A DNA stretch of 55,570 bases, filler included, from Platydemus manokwari (Eukaryota): NCBI GenBank assembly GCA_037951405.1. It is 5 parts of 5 records of this genome, joined end to end, with 100 filler letters (N's around TTAATTAATTAA, not from the genome) between each part and the next. Parts side by side here need not be neighbours in the genome. Positions count along the whole stretch, not along the records: positions 22,103 to 33,414 come from JBBMOY010771091.1; 4 more parts are not named here. The stretch is one strand, 5' to 3'. The notes beneath the pieces were generated by a model, which made no database searches, was not told the origin of the DNA, and worked only from the letters and a program-made list of their open reading frames with translations. Positions 22,103 through 33,414 of the stretch are shown here, in pieces. Position 1 is the first letter of the stretch. Each line of letters opens with the position of its first letter. A program made the position numbers and the translations under genes.

Positions 22103-22877
22103 AAATCAAACGTCGCAATTATATGTAAATGTAATTTATAAAATTATCTCATACGCGAAAATTCATTATTACAAAACTAAATTGGTTTTGTCATTATTAG
22201 ATATCCTAAAAAGTGAGATATTAACCCAGTTATACGAATAAATCAAACTTCGCAATTTTAGATAAAATTAAGTTATAAGGTTATGTCGTGCGCAAAAATT
22301 GATTAAAACGAAAGCAGAACTTAAGCCAATCAATAAATAAATCAATGCAAGCAAGACTATGATAAAACAATGGGTTGATTCCAATTATTTTAATTATATT
22401 ATTATAATAATATTATTTAATTATTATTTATTAATATTACCTTTAAAATTATTTTGATCCCATGACAAATTTCCACGACAGTCTCACAAAGCTTCTTGTC
22501 TCATAGTTACGTGGCTCTTTATTTAAAACAATAAGTTCATAATTTTTTAGAATAGTTTTTAGTTCAAGATAATTTCATTGATATTCGAATGAGTCAAAAG
22601 ATACATTGATAGAGAGGTTGTCGTTCAGGAATATTAATTTTTGATTAAGAATTACAACGAAAATATAGATTTGTAAAACACTTAATTGATTCTCACATCA
22701 CTTTCACTGACATTGATATGCCAAAAAAAATAAATTTTTCAACCGCCAACGTGAAATAACATTTTGCAGAATAACTCATATAATCTTATGGTAATGGATC
22801 CGTGATCTTGTTTCTGATTGTCATCTGATATTAACATTATTAATTTGTATTTTAAGATGACAACTACTCTATTTTAT

Positions 22878-22971
22878 TCGGGTCAATGATCTCAATAATA
22901 TCATAACAATATCGGGTCAATGATCTCAATAATATCATAACAATATCGGGTCAATGATCTCAATAATATCA
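22878..22971. repeat. 34-bp tandem repeat (~2.8 copies)
   Basis: Unit TCGGGTCAATGATCTCAATAATATCATAACAATA repeated head-to-tail without spacers. Confidence 0.9.
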
Positions 22972-23108
22972 CAATGGATTCATCGTATTGGATTAGTGAG
23001 AATAGTTATTTGCGAATTTAATGAAAAATTGTATGGTAGGAAATATAATTTAATACATGGTTTACTCCAAGACGCAGGGGAATACACACACAAAGTGACC
23101 GGATAAAT

Positions 23109-23198
23109 CAGAGGTTTTCAAACTTTTTTCTCTCATAGACCCCTTGCAGGTTCTCGTCGACCCTTGGGGATCGATATGGACCACTTTGGGAATCACTG
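23109..23198. mobile_element. hAT (Charlie-like) MITE, 90 bp
   Basis: Ends CAGAGGTTTTCAAA and TTTGGGAATCACTG (reverse complement CAGTGATTCCCAAA); the 8-bp flanks GGATAAAT and GGCTAAAT match at 7/8, as expected for a hAT target-site duplication. Confidence 0.75.
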
Positions 23199-23781
23199 GG
23201 CTAAATCAACGACTGATCATGGATGCATATTGATACCAAATCAAAATGGTAAGGAAAACATAGAATATTTTGAGAGAAATTCAGATAGTTTGTGTATTGA
23301 TCGAAAGAAACTATGTTTTAGTATTGATTAAAATCAATATTATGTAAATAACATTTTCAAATGACATGTCTTGACCTGATAATCATTATAGAATATTCAT
23401 ATTAGAAATTTTCGATTAAATATCATCTCCCTTTATGGATAGAGAATATAAATATAAAGCAATATAGCATTTTGATTTACTCTGATCACTTATTTGCTAG
23501 GTTTGAAGATTAAAAAAATTAAAAATATCAAATGAATTCAGTATTTTCCAATCAGAAAGTAAATCAATAAACCATCCAATCAAATTCAATCTTATAAATC
23601 ATCATAAAATACTACTCAATTGATTAATCATCTGTGAAAATTTTCAAAGAAATTAAGCACAACAAAATAATCGATTTTATTATAAAAAATAGTAATCTGA
23701 ACTCGTCAATTTCCAATCTTTACCATTTTAGCTGAATCAAGAAATATAATCAATAATAAATGCAAAATCGGGCACAATTAA

Positions 23782-26700
23782 TCAATCGATCAATGAGAAA
23801 TTAATCGTGAATTCATCGTCATCGTCGTCATCGTTGTCATGACAATTCCAATTCTCTTCATCAAGTTCTCGGTTGATATTTTCTTTTTCACCAGATTCAT
23901 CAGGCACCTACAACAAATTCGTGAAATTGTTTTCACATAAAAATATAAAAGGAAACATTGTGCCATTGTTCCATTGGGATTGTGTGAATGTATTCATCGC
24001 TATCAGTATCTGATTGAAGCTCTTTCGACGGTTTATCATAGACGAAGTCATTCTGTCAACATTAAAATCGATACAAAATAATCGTTGAAACCTCTAACTT
24101 GAAATTGTTCCAATACTTCTCGAGGAATATTGATTTCAAATGAAGCATCATCGCTCGACGATTGATGTCGATTCGGTGAAACTGTATCAGCTGATTGAAA
24201 GATGATTGGTTCATCTCCGAAAGGTGCTGCACAGGCGGAAAAATTCGCTTTTTTCTTGACGGTTTTTTTTCGCGATATTTTATTAGTTTTTTTGGTATTG
24301 ATAATTTCCGAATTATAAGGATCATTGATTATGAAATCATCGTTATCGTCATTATATAATTCAGAAATGCTAGTATTTATATCTTTATTCTGAAATACAG
24401 AAAATGATTGTAATGATCAAGTACCATCAAAACAAAAGTCGATTTAAAAATCAAAATATAAATCATAAATAATAGTTTTAATTGGAGTTATTATTGATTA
24501 TTTAGTTTGCAGGATAATTCAAGCATCACAGAAATAAATCGATTGCAGTTTGAAGTAAATCTTTGATTTTCAATCAAGGTTCCACGAAACCGAAGAATTC
24601 CATGAGAGTAAAATCAAAGGAATCACGAACCGCTTGTGCTCATCTTGTGCCCCTATTTATACAAAAAAACTGCATCATCTACAGTTTTTCTGCACGATAA
24701 CACGGTTTACAGTTTTCCATTAAAAACATTTTCGGTCTACAGAAATAACTAGCTAAAATAATGCTAGAGAACACATTGTCATTTATGGTTTTGTTAAACA
24801 TGAGGCCTAATACGAGCAGGCATTTTATACGAGATCGCGTCGTTAGATGTACCGGTACTTCAAAAGAAATAAAGTAAAAGCTAAGAATAAGATGAATTAT
24901 ATGGAGTTCTGTGTTTATAAGGGGTTCCATATCCATATATGAGTGTTAATGATAAATTATTATGCTCGTATTTCAATCAGAACTTGTCAAATGTTTCATG
25001 AATTGTCTGTCCTCGATTCTGCTGTATATTTACATTTTAGCTACACACTTTTAAAATAATATTTACAATAATTAATTTTGTCATTATTTTTTATAAATAT
25101 TTATAACTACATAGATGATATTATAAAGGCTACCTTTGAGAGTGACAAAAGCATTTTGGGTTTCTTCTTTAAATGACACACAGAATCATCAAAATCATCC
25201 GCAACACGTTTCACGCTTGGTTTGCGCTAAAGAAAAGAGCAAATTATTGATATAATTATATTATTCGGCTTTAAAGCGAATATTATTAATAAAAGATTAT
25301 AATTATTATTTTAATAATTCGATAATAATAATCATTATTATTATCATTAAGGTAGATATCAACACTGTATCGATCCATCATTTCATTTGTATAGATTTCA
25401 AAGATCCTTTATCGATCTAAAACTCCAATTTATCATTTAAGAGATTTATCAATAATTACGCTGCATGATCTTTATGTTGAATATTTATAAATAATAAAAC
25501 ATATCAATAATAGTTATTATTAAATTATAATTTATTAAAAAAACTTACATCTGTGTGTGGCAGAAACACTTTGGGCTTCTTTGGGATTTGAGATTCAGAT
25601 TCGCTAAAGTCTTCGGCAAAGCGTTTCGCAGGTGCTTTTTTCTGGAAGATAAATTTTGAGAATAAAAACAATTATTAGATTTGTCAAGAAAATCAATAAT
25701 AATAGTTATAATAATTATGATTATTATTTATATTATTATAGGTGGAATAATATAGGTGATTATATTATAATTGATTATTTTATGAGTAGCAAAATCATTT
25801 TTGGTTTCTTCGAGAAATGAGAATAGCTTTCTTAAACAGCGTGCGTGACAAAGGTTTAACTTGTCCATGATGGTGACGGTGTGTTTCCAAACACACACGC
25901 ACACACACAGTAAACTCCATTCAAATACTGTTCTCACCTTATTAATGCTTCTCATAAGCTGATTGTTTTGTTTCGATGTGGAACTATTCGACTCTTGTTT
26001 CTTTATTTGAGACAATAAATAACAAAAAACAATGCCATAAATTTACCAAAAGTTTTGGTTTGGCAGGTGTTGATTTGATGAATTCATTCGATTCGCTAAA
26101 TTTCTGCTTAAGATTCTCTCCGAATTTGTTGAAATTAGGACATTCTTGATTGGTTCTGATGTGACCTACAAAAATTTTCAGCTAATTTGTACCATGGATA
26201 TTATAAAATAAGTCAAATTTCTCTATGGTAACCATGGAGATTTTTAGAAAATTTAATTTTCTCAACATGAACATTTGTAAATAAATGATAAAATTTTGTC
26301 GATTGCCCCTAAATATAACAATAAAAAATCAAACCCTTTCGTCCACAGCTGCTGCAAATTTTATCTGTTGTATCTTGACAGTTAACATCGACAGGTAAAT
26401 TCATCTCAATTCGTTTCTTTTTGTAATTCTCTTGACGTCGAAGTTTATCCTAATAAATCGATATTCCATTGATATATAAAACAACCAATCATTTGTTACT
26501 CTCAACTGTTGTTTTTCTTTTTTGGCCAAATCTCCAATCCCGTACAATTTCTTACCGAATCGACCGCTTTTCGCGTGTTTCAAATAATTCAAAACATAAT
26601 CATTAACCAGATATTTCTCTTTTTTCACCACATCGCCTTTCTTTCTATAAATGATGAATTGAGCCAACGGATTTTCAATCAATTGTTTCACATTTTCCGA

Positions 26701-29700
26701 ACTGAATATCACCGGATTCACCACGGTTTTTTTCGGATTGTGAAAACTTTCCTAATGACAAAACGATTTGAAAATCAAAATGTCTGAAATAAACAGCAAA
26801 TATTTCTCTCATCTACCTTGAGATATTTTTGAAAATCTTCTATCGTTATATCTTTGGTTTCTGCTTTCAATATTTCTTCGCTGCATTCATTTTCGCTTTC
26901 CAGTTCATTTTGATTGGATAATATTATTCGATTAGCTTCAAAAGTGGCTTGACATTGTTGGATATATTTCATTCTCTATCGATGGATTTCAAATAATCAA
27001 TAATTCAATACCAGAATTTGTCATTATTAAATTCAATTATTGATTTTTAACTGAAATAAAAATCGATTCGATACGATCGAAAATTTTAAGAAATCAATTT
27101 CATTTATTCCATATTATCGATTAAATAATTTTATTCTCTATCGCTATATTTTATATAACCAGTAATTCAATATTAGAATTCTAATTATTATTGATTTTTA
27201 ATTGAAGTGAAATCGATTTTATTTAATCAATATTATCGATTATATTAGATTTATCGATTAAATTATTGATTGGAATTTTATTTGAATTTTTGTTGAATAT
27301 ATTTCGATTCCTACCATCAGATTTCAAATAATCAATATCAGAATTTAATTAAATTATTGATTTTTTAATCAAAATAATCGATTTCATTTAATTAATATTA
27401 TCGATTATACCAGAATTATCGATTAAATTATTGATTGAAATTTTATTTGAATTTTTCCTTATCCATTTATTATCGATAAATAACGTTCCTAAATATCTTC
27501 CGAAATAAACCTCGATTTTAATAAAACAAAATCAATTAAAAATCAATAAAAACAAATATAATATCATTCAGTAAATAATAGTTGAGGGATTTGGTGACGA
27601 GAGCCCGGAAAATATGTCGATATTTCTTGACATATATAAAATGGGTGATCGGATCACAATTTACGAGACACTTTATAAATAAATGTTTGACCAATGAGTT
27701 TGACAAAATCTACCATAAACCATAAGCGCATTGCCCGGAAAAATGTAAGACAATAAAAAATTAAACCAATCAATTACGATATTTCTTCGATTCGTTTTCG
27801 TATCTCTCGCATATTTCTCCATATCGGCATTGCCCTGCACACAAATCAAACATCAGCATACAAATATCAACTCCAATCGCACTACTCACCCCCAAATCCG
27901 TTGCTGCATGAGTTGACAAGTGATTCACCAACGCCCATCTAAAACGACACACAAACACACAAATCAATTTCCATCCAATGTTTAACCGTTCGAAATTTTC
28001 ACCTTTTCATTTTTTTCTTTTTGGAAAAATCAGCCAATCGAAATTTCTTCAACAATCGATTCGTTTCATAAACGGTCAATTTTCGTAAATCGGTTTTCTC
28101 ATTGATAATCCGTTTCGGTACCAGCGTTGTCACGTGCATAAAGGAATCCATTTGATGACGTTTCGTTGGTTGCTCGAAATTTTCCAATTTCCAAAATCCT
28201 CGATGGATACCATTGAGATACGATTTCGATATCGACCAAGGAGAAAATGGATTTTTCGGTTGTTTCTTCTAAATTTGTCCGTTTAAAACACGCCCATTCA
28301 TTGGACAACAATATTTTACTTTATCGATTTTGTGGGATTTTTTCAATTTCTTGTCCGGTTGAACATATTCGTACGAATTCAGATAGGAGAAAATTGCAGC
28401 CCAAATCATATATTGTTCGATTTCGACGTTGCCATAGAAACCATCGATTTCTGAAATCGGTGATTTTAATCGCCAAAATTTTTTATCGCTACCTAAATCA
28501 CAATCAAATCGATATGGACTCGAAACAGGAAACAATTCGCTCAATTCTTACTCAGAACGGCAATTTTCTGCAAATCAGATTCAATATTGATGAAATCGAT
28601 GTTGGATAAAATCGATGCCAGCAATTCAACTGGCACAGTTTGATGATCGATAAACAGTTGAAATACAACACGCTGAAATGAAATCAATTAAATGATTGGT
28701 CGATCTTGAAGCCAATTTTGGTCTATCGCGTGAGATGTTATTCAAATGAAAAGTCGATCTTACGTACACAAATGATATAGATCAAAATGTATCGATTAAA
28801 TGACATTGATTAAATTGGATTTATTAAATGACATGGATTAAATTGGATCAATTAAATGGCATGGATCAAAATGGATCGATCAATGATTAAGACAACAATA
28901 ATCAATTATTACCATCATTATTTTTTGGAAAAACATCGATTTCGGATTGTGAATTTTCATCAGAGGCATTTGTTTACCACCGAGAAACAAGCCGTCGAAT
29001 TTTCGAATAGCAAACTGGTCGCCATTGAGAAACAAGAGAAAATCTGTCGATTTCATTTGATGCTCATAAATCGGTACGCGGAAAAAGTCGTTTTCCAACG
29101 CCAACTGAAATGGAACATCATCAGACAGAGATCCGAAAAATGGCGATTTCCGTTTGATTTGTTTCGTAACTCCCAGATTGCTTGCAAAATTTTGCGGATT
29201 GTTGGAATACGCAACAAGTTCAGAAGTCAGCATTGATTGCATTCGAAACGGGGAATGCTGTTCCGATGTTTCATAGAAGAATATTCGATCTTTGCCAGCA
29301 GTGATCGTGAACGATTGATCGAAATCAAATGACGGAATATTTGTCGCTTCACCATTGGAAACCGTGTGGAATGTTGAGGGAAGATGGGCAATCTGTTTAC
29401 TAATGGCATCATCTTCACTGAATACAATTGGAAAGAATCGACGATCCATGTCGAGAAAATATCGATTTTGATTGACACTGACTGGATAATAATCCAAAAC
29501 CGTTCTTCTTGATGACGATTTGCCAATCTTAAGCGGAAAATTCTCAAATCCACACTGTAACGGACGATACCGAGCAAAAATTTCCCGAGCTAACTGAGGC
29601 ACACAGTACGATATTGTTGATTTAATATTCTTTTCATCATAAAACACATCATTTTCCCACCGTATCTGCTGCCATTGTTCAGGTCCATTCGACAAATCGA

Positions 29701-30050
29701 TGTCTGTTTTTCAACTCAATCATTCAGACAAATGAGTAAGGAAAATATTACTCTTATTCGATTCATCATTTTCTTCTTTTTCTTCATTCACTGAACAAAC
29801 AATATTATCATCCCAATCCTATGTATTGTTAAATCAAGGAAATCATTAATGATAAATTAAACACCATTCGTTGTTTTAATAACTTTTCGTATTCCCATGT
29901 TTCGAATTGTGGTCGATTTTTTGTTTGATCTATGATTTTCATAATTCATTAATTAATATTCAGAAACTAACTTTCAACATATTCTTGAATAGAAAGCTGA
30001 CATGGAATTGTTAGACAATTAGTTTTGTCTATTAAATTTCTATTTTGCAT
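23782..30050 (-). CDS. TAF1: Divergent TAF1-like protein (TFIID subunit 1): central domain plus zinc knuckle, no bromodomains
   Basis: Manually spliced GT-AG exons give TAF1 motifs in the expected order: DWDDNIV, RWENDVFYD, SPFFGSL...ALENDFFRVPIYEHQMKSTDFLL, SPWSISKSYL, DLRKLTVYETNRLLKKF, RWALVNHLS, MEKYARD, KYIQQCQATFEANRIILS, FIIYRK, KKEKQQLRDKLRRQ and the knuckle ICSSCGRKGHIRTNQECP (split by intron 26166-26334). Low-complexity exons follow, to a stop at 23782-23784. The ATG at 30050 is tentative. Confidence 0.85.
26990..27460. repeat. Degenerate tandem repeat (~3 copies, unit roughly 150-170 bp) in a TAF1-like intron
   Basis: Recurring block AATTATTGATTTTTAA...AAATCGATT...ATATTATCGATTA, followed in two copies by GAATTTT/GAAATTTTATTTGAATTTTT. 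Confidence 0.7.
28792..28882. repeat. ~28-bp tandem repeat x3 in a TAF1-like intron
   Basis: Repeated ATTAAATGACATGGATTAAATTGGAT-like unit. Confidence 0.7.
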
Positions 30051-33000
30051 TAAGTACTCTAAAATGATTTACAAAATAAAATTGAAGAATGATTATTTCC
30101 AGTTCAATTTCAAATAAGTGTTCAGATATTTAAATTCAACACAATTTTTCTATTAAATTTCTAAGCAAATATCAATAACATTGAATTAAATTTTTCAAAA
30201 ATTAAAATAATTATTCAATTTATGAGATATATTATATAAACAATATTTTAATTTTCAAGATTAGAAAATTAATTTAATTAGAAATTGATATTATAATAGC
30301 AAACTAAAAATGAAATGTTTGGATTATTAAGTCTGTTTGGGAAAAATTATGGTTAAAATTAAATTCAAAATAGTAAAAAATATATTATTCATGCTAAGAT
30401 ATTCACAATGGTAATATATTATTATTTTATAAAATTAATTAATTCTATGAATAATCACTGAAGAAAATAGTTATTTATACAACATTATACTTTTACAATC
30501 AATAGAATAAATATGATGGCAAATTTTGTGTTAATTTTGTTATTTATTTTATCCCCAAAACATGAAAGTGACGTAAATCTAATCTTTTTATTCGAAATTG
30601 TGAAATATTTATGCTAGATATCACAAATGAGAATAATAATAATAATAATAATAATAATTATTATTATTATTATCATTATTATTACATAAAGCAAAAAAAA
30701 ATTTTATAAGAAAAATTTTCAAGCCTAAGCCCCGAGTGGAATTTATTTATAGACTAAAACACAATACACGAATAAAGAAAATTAATAATGCATAGTAATT
30801 TCTATAGCAAAGACATAAAGCCAATGAATAAAAATCAAAGAGGCACATAAATACCACAGATAAATAATTGAAGAAAAATCAATAACAGATAAATCAAACA
30901 AAGTATATGCACTCTACTGTAGTAGGAGATCAAAATAAATACAAAGAGAGTAAGTGGAATGTAGAATACATAAATAGAAAAGGAATTTTTACTTGCTTCC
31001 ACAATCACATAATGCAAATATCTTTCATTCAATTCAAAGCGAAAGATAAAATGAACCAGATGAAGCAAAAAGTGAGCTTATAAAATGTTTATAAATGTAC
31101 CAAAAAGTTAAATATTGAATGGAGACTGTATGTAGCAGCTGAAGGCGGAGATATTTGACATAGAGAAACGATTTGACATTTATGTACATTTGATAATTTG
31201 TCGTATGACAAACATTTTAATGTTTTTTATCTCATTAAGATGCATATATTAATTTTTTATTGTTTTAGAATTTCTTGTTTATAAATTCTTTTCTGTTGGT
31301 TCTAACTTTTAAGTCTCCCAGGACTTTGATAATAAGTATGAGGTCTATAGTATATATAAACTGAATATCTGAAGATCCTTTTTATAATAATTTAAACCAG
31401 TTTTTAACTCAAATGAATATAACAGAGATTTTTCTCTTTTTTTTTTTACTAAAATGAGTTATTAAGTAATGACAAGTGATATATTGATCGAGATTAATAA
31501 TCAATATGATTGATAAATGCAAATTAGAACCAAACATGCTTCAAACAAATTTCTAGAGAGCTTTGTTTTGCTAATCTTAATCAGGCACACAGACATATAA
31601 ATTACTTAATATTCAATTTTTAATAATTTAATAATTTTTTTAATAATTGATTAAAATTTTTTTTAAATCTTGAAATTATCACTGAATTATCAAAACTATT
31701 TGTTTAAATTTTTTTATTAAATAATTATTTAATTATTATTGAATTTGTTCGTTTTAATTTTCCTCACAATATTCATATTTAACGATTTTAAGTCTTACGC
31801 CGCTCAGGTGTTTCTGCAGAAACTCCTTAGCAACATGATTATTTCAAACCTTCGAAAAATTCGATCAATGTGCAATTGATTTATCCAAATTTTATACGCT
31901 GCTGTGAATTGTAATGTATTCGCGTGCAATGACTGATTCGAATGAATGTTTATTCTTAATTGTACTTCCTCGTGATTAAATATCACCAATTAATTTGCTG
32001 AGTGATTGCTATTGTACTATTTTCGCTGTAGTTTTAGTGTGACAGTTTTTTGTAGGTAGCCGACCGACACTCAGACCAACTACTCATACCTCTCTCAACA
32101 CGCGGGCTGCAAGGATTGTCGTTTTTGTTAATCACTTAATTATCCAAATATTTTAATTTTTCTAGTATTATATAATTTTAATATTTTTATTAATTATCTT
32201 TATTAATTAATTCTATATTTTATATTTATTTATATTTATAATAAATTATGTAAGAAATAAATAACTTTATTGAAAATAAGTCAAAGTAAGAATTAATATG
32301 TTAATATCACGATTAGTAAAATGAAAAAGTAAAGTTAGTAAAGTTATTTAATGAATATAAAACTAGGTAAATAAAATAGTAGAACCAGAATAAAATAAAT
32401 CGTTTGTATTTAAAAGTAGTCGCATTATTCAGAGCAGTACAATAGTTACAACTATACATATATTTTGAAAGAGAGACAAGTCTAAGGCAAAGTACTTATG
32501 TACAACACTCAAAAGGTTCTGTAATGATCACTTAATGATCACACATGCCAATAACCAATCAGGTGCCTCCAAAATATCAATCTAAATAGAATTCGATAAC
32601 CAATTGGCGCACGTCAACACGAGGCAACAAAAAATAGGATAAGCCAAGAAATCGAAAAAGTTAAGCCAACAGATAAAGGAACACAGAAAGTCTATAAAAT
32701 TAGTTAGATCTGGGAAGTATTTTTTGGTCGGTAATTATTGCTTATCTTACTTTTTTGTGTGATTATTATAATGACCAATCTTTAATATTTGTAGTTTTTG
32801 TTTCTATTTTATCTTTCAGGTCGACTTCCTTGAATATGATTTAGAGTATGAATATTGACAAATTTATTTTAAAGTGCAACTTTGATTATAATTACATTTT
32901 CGAATATTCAGTGTTAACGAATATTGTTTAGTAAAGATGAAATCACATAAAAGAAAAATAACTTTATGCTTTGGGACCATGAAGGCACAGCACCCAGCCA

Positions 33001-33414
33001 ATTAGTGAGAACTTAAATGGAAGATAGATACACATAGTTTCTTGTTATTACTTATCTTATAATTTAATGATTTATCCAAAACTGAACTCATTTGTTGAAT
33101 ACTATTATTTTACTGGTCTTTATGGTTTGATTTAATTCTTAATTCTTATTAATCTTTTTGAAATTTTTATTGTGAAGTGTCTAGATGAAAATTACTGTAA
33201 TATCGTATGAGAATTTATTACCATAATCACCGAAGTATAATGCTCCCATTTTCGTATCAAATTTCAACATTAAAAATGTGGGGAGTATTATACTTGAGTA
33301 TGTAAGAAAGCTCAAATTATGTAATTGTTATTTAATTAGATAAGTATGTTTATTAACAATTTTTAAACGACAATCATTCTGATCCCCCAACAAGCATGAC
33401 TGACACGCCAGAAT

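Follow-up and report, generated by a model that had tools for sequence, protein, structure and literature searches.

Tandem bromodomains and a TAND are textbook features of TAF1 in the animal transcription factor TFIID – through the former, promoter recognition is linked to histone acetylation, and the latter controls the TATA-binding protein (TBP). A TAF1-like gene with neither module, found in a window of 55,570 nucleotides (nt) joined from five parts of the Platydemus manokwari assembly GCA_037951405.1 (the whole stretch of DNA analysed), raises the question of whether TAF1 can persist as a TFIID scaffold stripped of both. Here the gene was analysed in the piece JBBMOY010771091.1 (positions 22103-33414 of the window, 11.3 kb, 28.6% G+C, no N), where TAF1-like open frames run on the minus strand from about 30050 to 23782. 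It is a real TAF1-family member that has kept the core and the zinc knuckle, and within the 11.3 kb piece it is without bromodomains or a TAND. A conserved, intron-rich TAF1 of this kind would represent a small clade absent from annotated genomes, and would be either a natural experiment in animal TFIID without TAND and bromodomains or a TAF1 paralogue of a new class that serves a variant TFIID.

The exon limits were taken from the sequence by reading and then checked by script from the coordinates alone; database searches, family scans and structure predictions were run exon by exon, the joined protein being used only for the frame check, local comparison and intron alignment. The resulting coding sequence (23782-30050, minus strand, as are all exons below) comprises 19 exons, 3,075 nt and 1,024 codons with 0 internal stops and ends in a TGA at 23784-23782. 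All 18 introns are GT-AG; most measure 42-65 nt and the longer ones 169, 240, 296, 322, 744 and 802 nt, and G+C is higher in the exons than in the introns. The in-frame canonical splicing and the stop at 23782 proposed in the sequence-only reading were thus both recovered. The coordinate model is accompanied by exon-by-exon conservation with two short environmental contigs, L001 and L002, which carry the open reading frame (ORF) fragments P0001 and P0002 retrieved by a word search with exon 4 (60-61% and 49-50% identity to the window gene in the exon 4 region, respectively).

Membership of the TAF1 family was clearest for exon 4 (28913-29703), which encodes the N-terminal half of the DUF3591 core together with a WEDD-type motif (~29665-29630). 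In Pfam its translation matched PF12157 (DUF3591) over profile positions 80-229 (29323-28916), with E 1e-15 and 57.9 bits against a cut-off of 25, and in the PDB it retrieved chains of human TAF1 (E 2.6e-11) as well as yeast Taf1 (E 1.4e-4). The human DUF3591 core binds TAF7 and carries a winged-helix DNA-binding part. In tblastn searches with fetched TAF1 proteins the matches were colinear, with exon 4 aligning with the core of every TAF1 and exons 6-7 weakly with the next part of it, and in a local comparison the RWEDD(I/V)I(W/Y)D motifs of canonical TAF1s lined up with an RWEND-type motif in exon 4. This motif is preceded by a first WEDD-like motif, DWDD, which opens exon 3 (29752-29818, placed from the coordinate model and comparison with L002). 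The remaining core, including the stretch matching the winged-helix part, is assigned to exons 5-9 (27778-28672; exon 5 28672-28552, exon 6 28492-28320, exon 7 28268-28003, exon 8 27938-27890 and exon 9 27834-27778) from identity to L001/L002 and from tblastn matches that were colinear with the archive protein P0004 and weakly so with canonical TAF1s. Taken singly, core exons other than exon 4 gave no Pfam match, and exon 7 found no sequence match in the PDB either alone or as a 4-row profile. An AlphaFold2 (AF2) prediction of the exon 4 piece from a 5-row alignment reached a predicted local distance difference test score (pLDDT) of 34.

Between core and knuckle lies a linker encoded by exons 10-11 (26500-26975; 26975-26817 and 26751-26500), identified by colinear local alignments to canonical TAF1s and P0004; residues 557-700 aligned with the pre-knuckle linker of canonical TAF1s, and exons 11-12 matched P0004 in tblastn. 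The knuckle itself is split by intron 12 (169 nt, 26334-26166), so that exon 12 (26335-26449; 44% identity to P0004 residues 668-706) ends with its first half (26356-26335) and exon 13 (26047-26165; tblastn and knuckle spacing) begins with the second (26165-26140). The joined halves have the spacing Cx2Cx4Hx6C, and the start of exon 13 matched the knuckle of eight TAF1s with 37-69% identity. The glycine after the second Cys, the glycine before the His and the proline after the last Cys are kept; of the two basic residues conserved in the knuckle, one is present as Arg and the other is Gln. Searched separately, the halves did not match Pfam zf-CCHC_6. A Cx2Cx4Hx6C zinc knuckle C-terminal to the core is an invariable feature of TAF1 (Curran et al. 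2018, PMC5854669). The earlier description of a TAF1-like protein running from WEDD-like motifs through the central TAF7-binding/winged-helix region to a complete knuckle therefore stands.

Downstream of the knuckle, and in the piece as a whole, nothing resembling a bromodomain was detected. In tblastn with bromodomain-bearing TAF1s only core and knuckle aligned, no bromodomain part reaching E ≤ 1 in the piece, and Pfam gave no match in the tail pieces, bromodomain included. A hidden Markov model (HMM) of 70 TAF1 bromodomains, run against 630 six-frame pieces (≥12 amino acids, aa) of 22103-33414, gave a best score of 4 bits (E 1.6). As a control, the domains of Intoshia and Halicephalobus were held out, the HMM was rebuilt and the domains were cut in thirds of ~33 aa; all 12 of 12 fragments gave 10-43 bits, clearly higher than any piece of the window. 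In a MAFFT alignment the starts of exon 19 and of Priapulus bromodomain 2 fell together, which was taken as chance because the bromodomain HMM sees nothing there. For the TAND (PF09247, TBP-binding), Pfam and a local TAND HMM gave noise only, though a short, poorly conserved TAND could be too divergent to detect. The same ATG opens the gene in L002, where a stop codon lies directly upstream and introns 1-3 are in the same places, which makes the short N-terminus a trait of the clade. Exon 1 (29972-30050, start codon 30050-30048) is kept with its ATG in L002 and exon 2 (29865-29929) shows 61% aa identity to it. Both absences noted in the sequence-only reading, of a bromodomain motif and of an evident TAND, were accordingly confirmed, the former by the six-frame search. 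In canonical relatives, TAND, DUF3591 and knuckle are accompanied by one or two bromodomains. The second bromodomain is described as present in all metazoans, with repeated loss of the TAF1 bromodomain in fungi (Antonova et al. 2019, PMC6672047), and a literature search turned up neither an animal TAF1 lacking bromodomains nor a TAF1 paralogue in an invertebrate.

Two further cases came to light in the course of these searches. The springtail Orchesella dallaii has two annotated TAF1-like proteins, P0035 and P0050, with a strong DUF3591 (373-378 bits); P0050 has a Pfam zinc-knuckle match, P0035 only a Cx2Cx4H-type motif by pattern search, and neither model has a bromodomain, so that they may be another bromodomain-less animal TAF1 or else truncated models. 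The contig L008 (Logan SRR31175926) contains a very AT-biased TAF1 core ORF (P0017, 722 aa, 1541-3709) and, next on that strand, a bromodomain ORF of 661 aa (3944-5929), probably one gene of an unrelated organism split by an intron or a frameshift.

In place of bromodomains, the knuckle is followed by a predicted tail of 284 aa that is K/S-rich and then acidic, in the composition the sequence-only reading had given for it. It is encoded by exon 14 (25938-26000, K/S/N-rich, in-frame GT-AG model), exon 15 (25549-25641, 93 nt, with a basic KKPK-type motif), exon 16 (25134-25226, 93 nt), exon 17 (24099-24389, a low-complexity part) and exons 18-19 (23782-24052; 24052-23957 and 23907-23782, coordinate model), which supply the acidic end and the stop codon. 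The acidic end resembles the acidic tails of other TAF1s in composition only. G+C at the first, second and third codon positions (GC1/2/3) follows the same pattern in exons 14-19 (0.45/0.31/0.33) and exons 1-13 (0.43/0.30/0.36), and the 122-aa open frame that holds exon 17 was reached by 11 of 2,000 shuffles. The AF2 model of this largest tail exon piece had a pLDDT of 45 and nearly no secondary structure, weak evidence that would fit disorder. Exons 15 and 16 have equal length and phase (phase 0), with 12 of 27 aa identical; their DNA shares 62% nt identity and their flanks 30-37%. Such identity between unrelated flanks indicates that the pair arose by tandem duplication and that the exon bodies alone have been kept, under weak constraint as judged from the proportions of differences at synonymous (pS 0.51) and replacement (pN 0.34) sites. 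The two exons could both be included or be mutually exclusive alternatives. Past the stop by 101 nt, an AATAAA at 23676-23681 (minus strand) is a candidate poly(A) signal, weak evidence since the hexamer is common in AT-rich DNA.

The relatives also allowed selection on the gene to be examined. In tblastx comparisons with L001 and L002, blocks of conservation followed the exon limits and vanished in the introns. Exons 5-9 shared 62-88% aa identity with the two contigs while synonymous sites were saturated; specifically, exons 5 and 7 were 83-88% identical to L001, and exon 9 likewise to L002, the closest relative seen for each. Over 428 codons compared with L001, pN was 0.175 and pS 0.77, and over 518 codons compared with L002 the values were 0.234 and 0.84. 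Saturated synonymous but unsaturated replacement sites indicate purifying selection and not a pseudogene, and the pattern is that of an essential gene. A neutral dN/dS against relatives, together with no expression, had been proposed beforehand as the mark of a pseudogene; the values were not neutral (pN 0.18-0.23 vs pS 0.77-0.84), and over exons 1-9 a pseudogene is excluded.

Placement of the gene was approached through an exhaustive search, which returned 133 proteins at E ≤ 0.001, the best after P0001 and P0002 being P0003 and P0004 (35-36% identity). Among the 28 named matches, 27 were from animals and one from a choanoflagellate (Monosiga). P0003 is an ORF on a JGI metagenome contig (28% G+C), and P0004 (UniParc UPI00060FE917), which alone in the clade comes from a sequence archive, is a very AT-biased protein of 751 aa; its DUF3591 is weak (66 bits), its knuckle lies at residue 699 and it has no bromodomain. 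Maximum-likelihood analysis of the exon 4 region in these five sequences and 39 canonical TAF1s joined the window gene with P0001 and P0002 (support 100/99) as sister to P0003 and P0004 (98/96), the five-member clade (100/100) being separated from the canonical TAF1s by a stem of ~3 substitutions per site. Only five members thus came to light in a library built from ~15 billion proteins, four of them from environmental assemblies, which argues that the host lineage, and not just the gene, is rare in databases. Further searches did not enlarge the clade: a word search with exon 11 gave no match and one with P0004 only P0004 itself, a JGI metagenome scan found no contig beyond the known source of P0003, and an ESM Atlas feature search returned only unrelated low-score clusters. 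In fast-evolving animals DUF3591 still scored 410 bits (Intoshia), 400 bits (a monogenean) and 433 bits (a nematode). When introns were compared with the 33 of Priapulus TAF1, only intron 4 coincided exactly (phase 0), with intron 5 in the same phase as a Priapulus intron five columns away; one or two of ~9 alignable positions were thus common with Priapulus and none with Halicephalobus or Cichlidogyrus. Most of the intron positions are unlike the conserved animal pattern, as in fast-evolving genomes. The metazoan label given to the gene beforehand stood in part, the animal-dominated hit list (27 of 28) and the intron shared with Priapulus being all that speaks for it. Bdelloid rotifers, Strongyloides and arbuscular fungi seem improbable as the source, since annotated kin of theirs would have been expected among the close matches.

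These data may best be explained if the gene is the TAF1 orthologue of a fast-evolving and very poorly sampled lineage of animals or their close relatives, a reading that we hold at a little under an even chance and to which we lean slightly over that of a paralogue. It is favored by the strong constraint, by the rarity of the clade, which points to an unsampled host lineage, and by heavy intron turnover. The protein would be a TFIID scaffold keeping the WEDD-type motifs, DUF3591, linker, DNA-binding knuckle, a basic stretch resembling a nuclear localization signal and the acidic tail; as the parts that bind TAF7 and DNA in human TAF1 are kept, a scaffold without an in-cis reader or TAND control would be the most economical mechanism. 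TFIID of this lineage would then not read acetyl-lysine through TAF1, reading being supplied in trans, in the manner of yeast Bdf1 or the bromodomains of fungal TAF2, or absent altogether, and TBP would be handled without a TAND. Incorporation into TFIID, orthology, a trans-acting reader and an animal origin are all steps that we infer. A bolder version, in which the only TAF1 of an animal lineage lost both TAND and double bromodomain in an independent, yeast-style split of TFIID, is possible but doubtful; if true, it would contradict the view that all metazoan TAF1s have tandem bromodomains. Several points weigh against the orthologue. A canonical TAF1 may lie elsewhere in the genome, and all metazoans are said to have the second bromodomain (Antonova et al. 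2019, PMC6672047). All the fast-evolving animals sampled keep DUF3591 at 400-433 bits, compared with 58 for exon 4 and 66 for full-length P0004, and a jump of ~3 substitutions per site would also be expected from relaxed constraint after duplication. Lastly, tail exons 14-19 are only predicted, from in-frame GT-AG splicing.

An old, fast-evolving paralogue that stands beside a canonical TAF1 and has a variant TFIID of its own, for example in the germline, having shed both ends because that complex is recruited differently, is a serious possibility, though short of a probable one. The extreme distance of the clade from canonical TAF1s, while the Intoshia, flatworm and nematode orthologues stay canonical, is in keeping with it, as is the joint loss of TAND and bromodomains, the two regulatory ends. 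In public models the springtail has duplicated TAF1-like genes (P0035, P0050) and a stalk-eyed fly has TAF1-like entries; the testis TAFs of Drosophila are a further example of TAF paralogues. TAF1L, TAF7L and TAF4B make such paralogues a known theme (PMC6672047). However, constraint among the close relatives is strong and not relaxed, the 18 introns exclude a retrocopy like primate TAF1L, and an old copy in a well-sampled phylum should occur in many annotated genomes, where P0004 is the single archive sequence. The lineage could instead be fungus-like or protist, in which case a bromodomain-less TAF1 would be ordinary; this bears on the metazoan label and leaves the mechanism untouched, overlaps with the orthologue reading and is unlikely. 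The tree fails to nest the clade within animals, setting it on a long branch opposite the 39 others including Monosiga, one relative comes from a JGI metagenome, TAF1 bromodomains were lost repeatedly in fungi (PMC6672047), and conservation of fungal TAF1 ends just past the knuckle (PMC5854669), as P0004 does. Yet all 28 named matches are animal or choanoflagellate in a library rich in fungal genomes, human TAF1 was matched far better than yeast Taf1 (E 2.6e-11 vs E 1.4e-4), and Priapulus TAF1 has an intron at the position, and in the phase, of intron 4. That bromodomains were missed, either because the transcript leaves the knuckle region for exons below 22103 or because exons 14-19 are mispredicted, is improbable: the piece ends 1.7 kb past the stop codon, the tail has no homologue and constraint between exons 15 and 16 is weak (pS 0.51, pN 0.34), but six successive in-frame GT-AG junctions, coding-like GC1/2/3, a 122-aa frame rare in shuffles, the conservation of exons 15/16 and not of their flanks, the TAF1-like composition of the acidic end and the AATAAA 101 nt past the stop all speak for the tail as modelled. 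Nothing bromodomain-like was seen down to 22103, and a jump of >4 kb to distant exons would be atypical here, where the largest intron is 802 nt. Finally, a very divergent core with domains missing at both ends might suggest a decaying pseudogene, an idea that is refuted for exons 1-9 and has next to no chance overall, given 19 exons without stop or frameshift, exons but not introns conserved in two relatives, and pN far below pS.

The sequence around and within the gene showed several other features. Upstream of the ATG, at a distance of 8 nt, the acceptor-like sequence TTTTAG (30059-30064, minus strand, from sequence reading; not conserved in L002) is a possible acceptor for a 5' untranslated region intron or for spliced-leader trans-splicing. 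The 3.3 kb upstream of the gene have 25% G+C and no recognisable coding sequence, with back-to-back AAT/ATT microsatellites at 30632-30684, ~600 nt before the start codon. In 22103-33414, CpG is over-represented (observed/expected 1.31, no CpG depletion), and 30 copies of the hexamer ATCGAT, often lying in introns, stand against an expectation of 3.8. Intron 9 (26976-27777, minus strand, 802 nt, 22% G+C) holds several short AT-rich arrays with ATCGAT-type units (27343-27442), intron 4 a 28-bp tandem repeat of 3.9 copies (28770-28877), and downstream of the gene, at 22878-22971, a 34-bp unit is repeated in tandem 2.8 times without a mismatch (100% match). Open frames at 22933-23328 (plus strand) that looked transposase-like by eye were considered as a mariner relic and discarded as unsupported, Pfam giving nothing at E ≤ 1. 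Scans of the whole piece found no Rfam or tRNA match, and a bacterial promoter scan, a type irrelevant to this gene, showed no enrichment.

Compared with canonical metazoan TAF1 (human, Drosophila and C. elegans TAF-1), the window gene has the same order of WEDD-type motifs, DUF3591, linker, Cx2Cx4Hx6C knuckle, basic stretch and acidic C-terminus, and one intron position and phase in common with Priapulus TAF1. It differs in having neither the TAND nor the double bromodomain, in its length (~1,024 aa against 1,500-1,900 aa) and in its DUF3591, which scores 58 bits, Pfam seeing exon 4 alone, whereas other animals reach 370-530 bits. Primate TAF1L and the germline TAF paralogues are a precedent for an extra TAF1 copy serving a variant TFIID, although TAF1L was retrotransposed in the primate lineage and the window gene has 18 introns, no end modules and far greater divergence. 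Retrocopies of the TAF1L type are intronless and keep the full domain set, and the 18 introns thus show that the window gene is not one of them. Within its own clade, P0004 and P0003 share with it a weak DUF3591, the same pattern of core insertions, a knuckle near the end, the absence of a bromodomain and a strong AT bias, but are only 28-30% identical to it in exon 4, and P0004, which may be a truncated model, ends 37 residues past the knuckle. The closest parallel to the "split" idea put forward in the sequence-only reading is the dikaryan fungal TAF1 with its separate Bdf1, which likewise has a core and a zinc knuckle without a bromodomain. Yeast Taf1, however, keeps the TAND that the window gene is without, and in fungal TAF1 conservation ends just past the knuckle (PMC5854669), whereas the window gene continues for 284 aa beyond it and its matches are animal-like instead of fungal.

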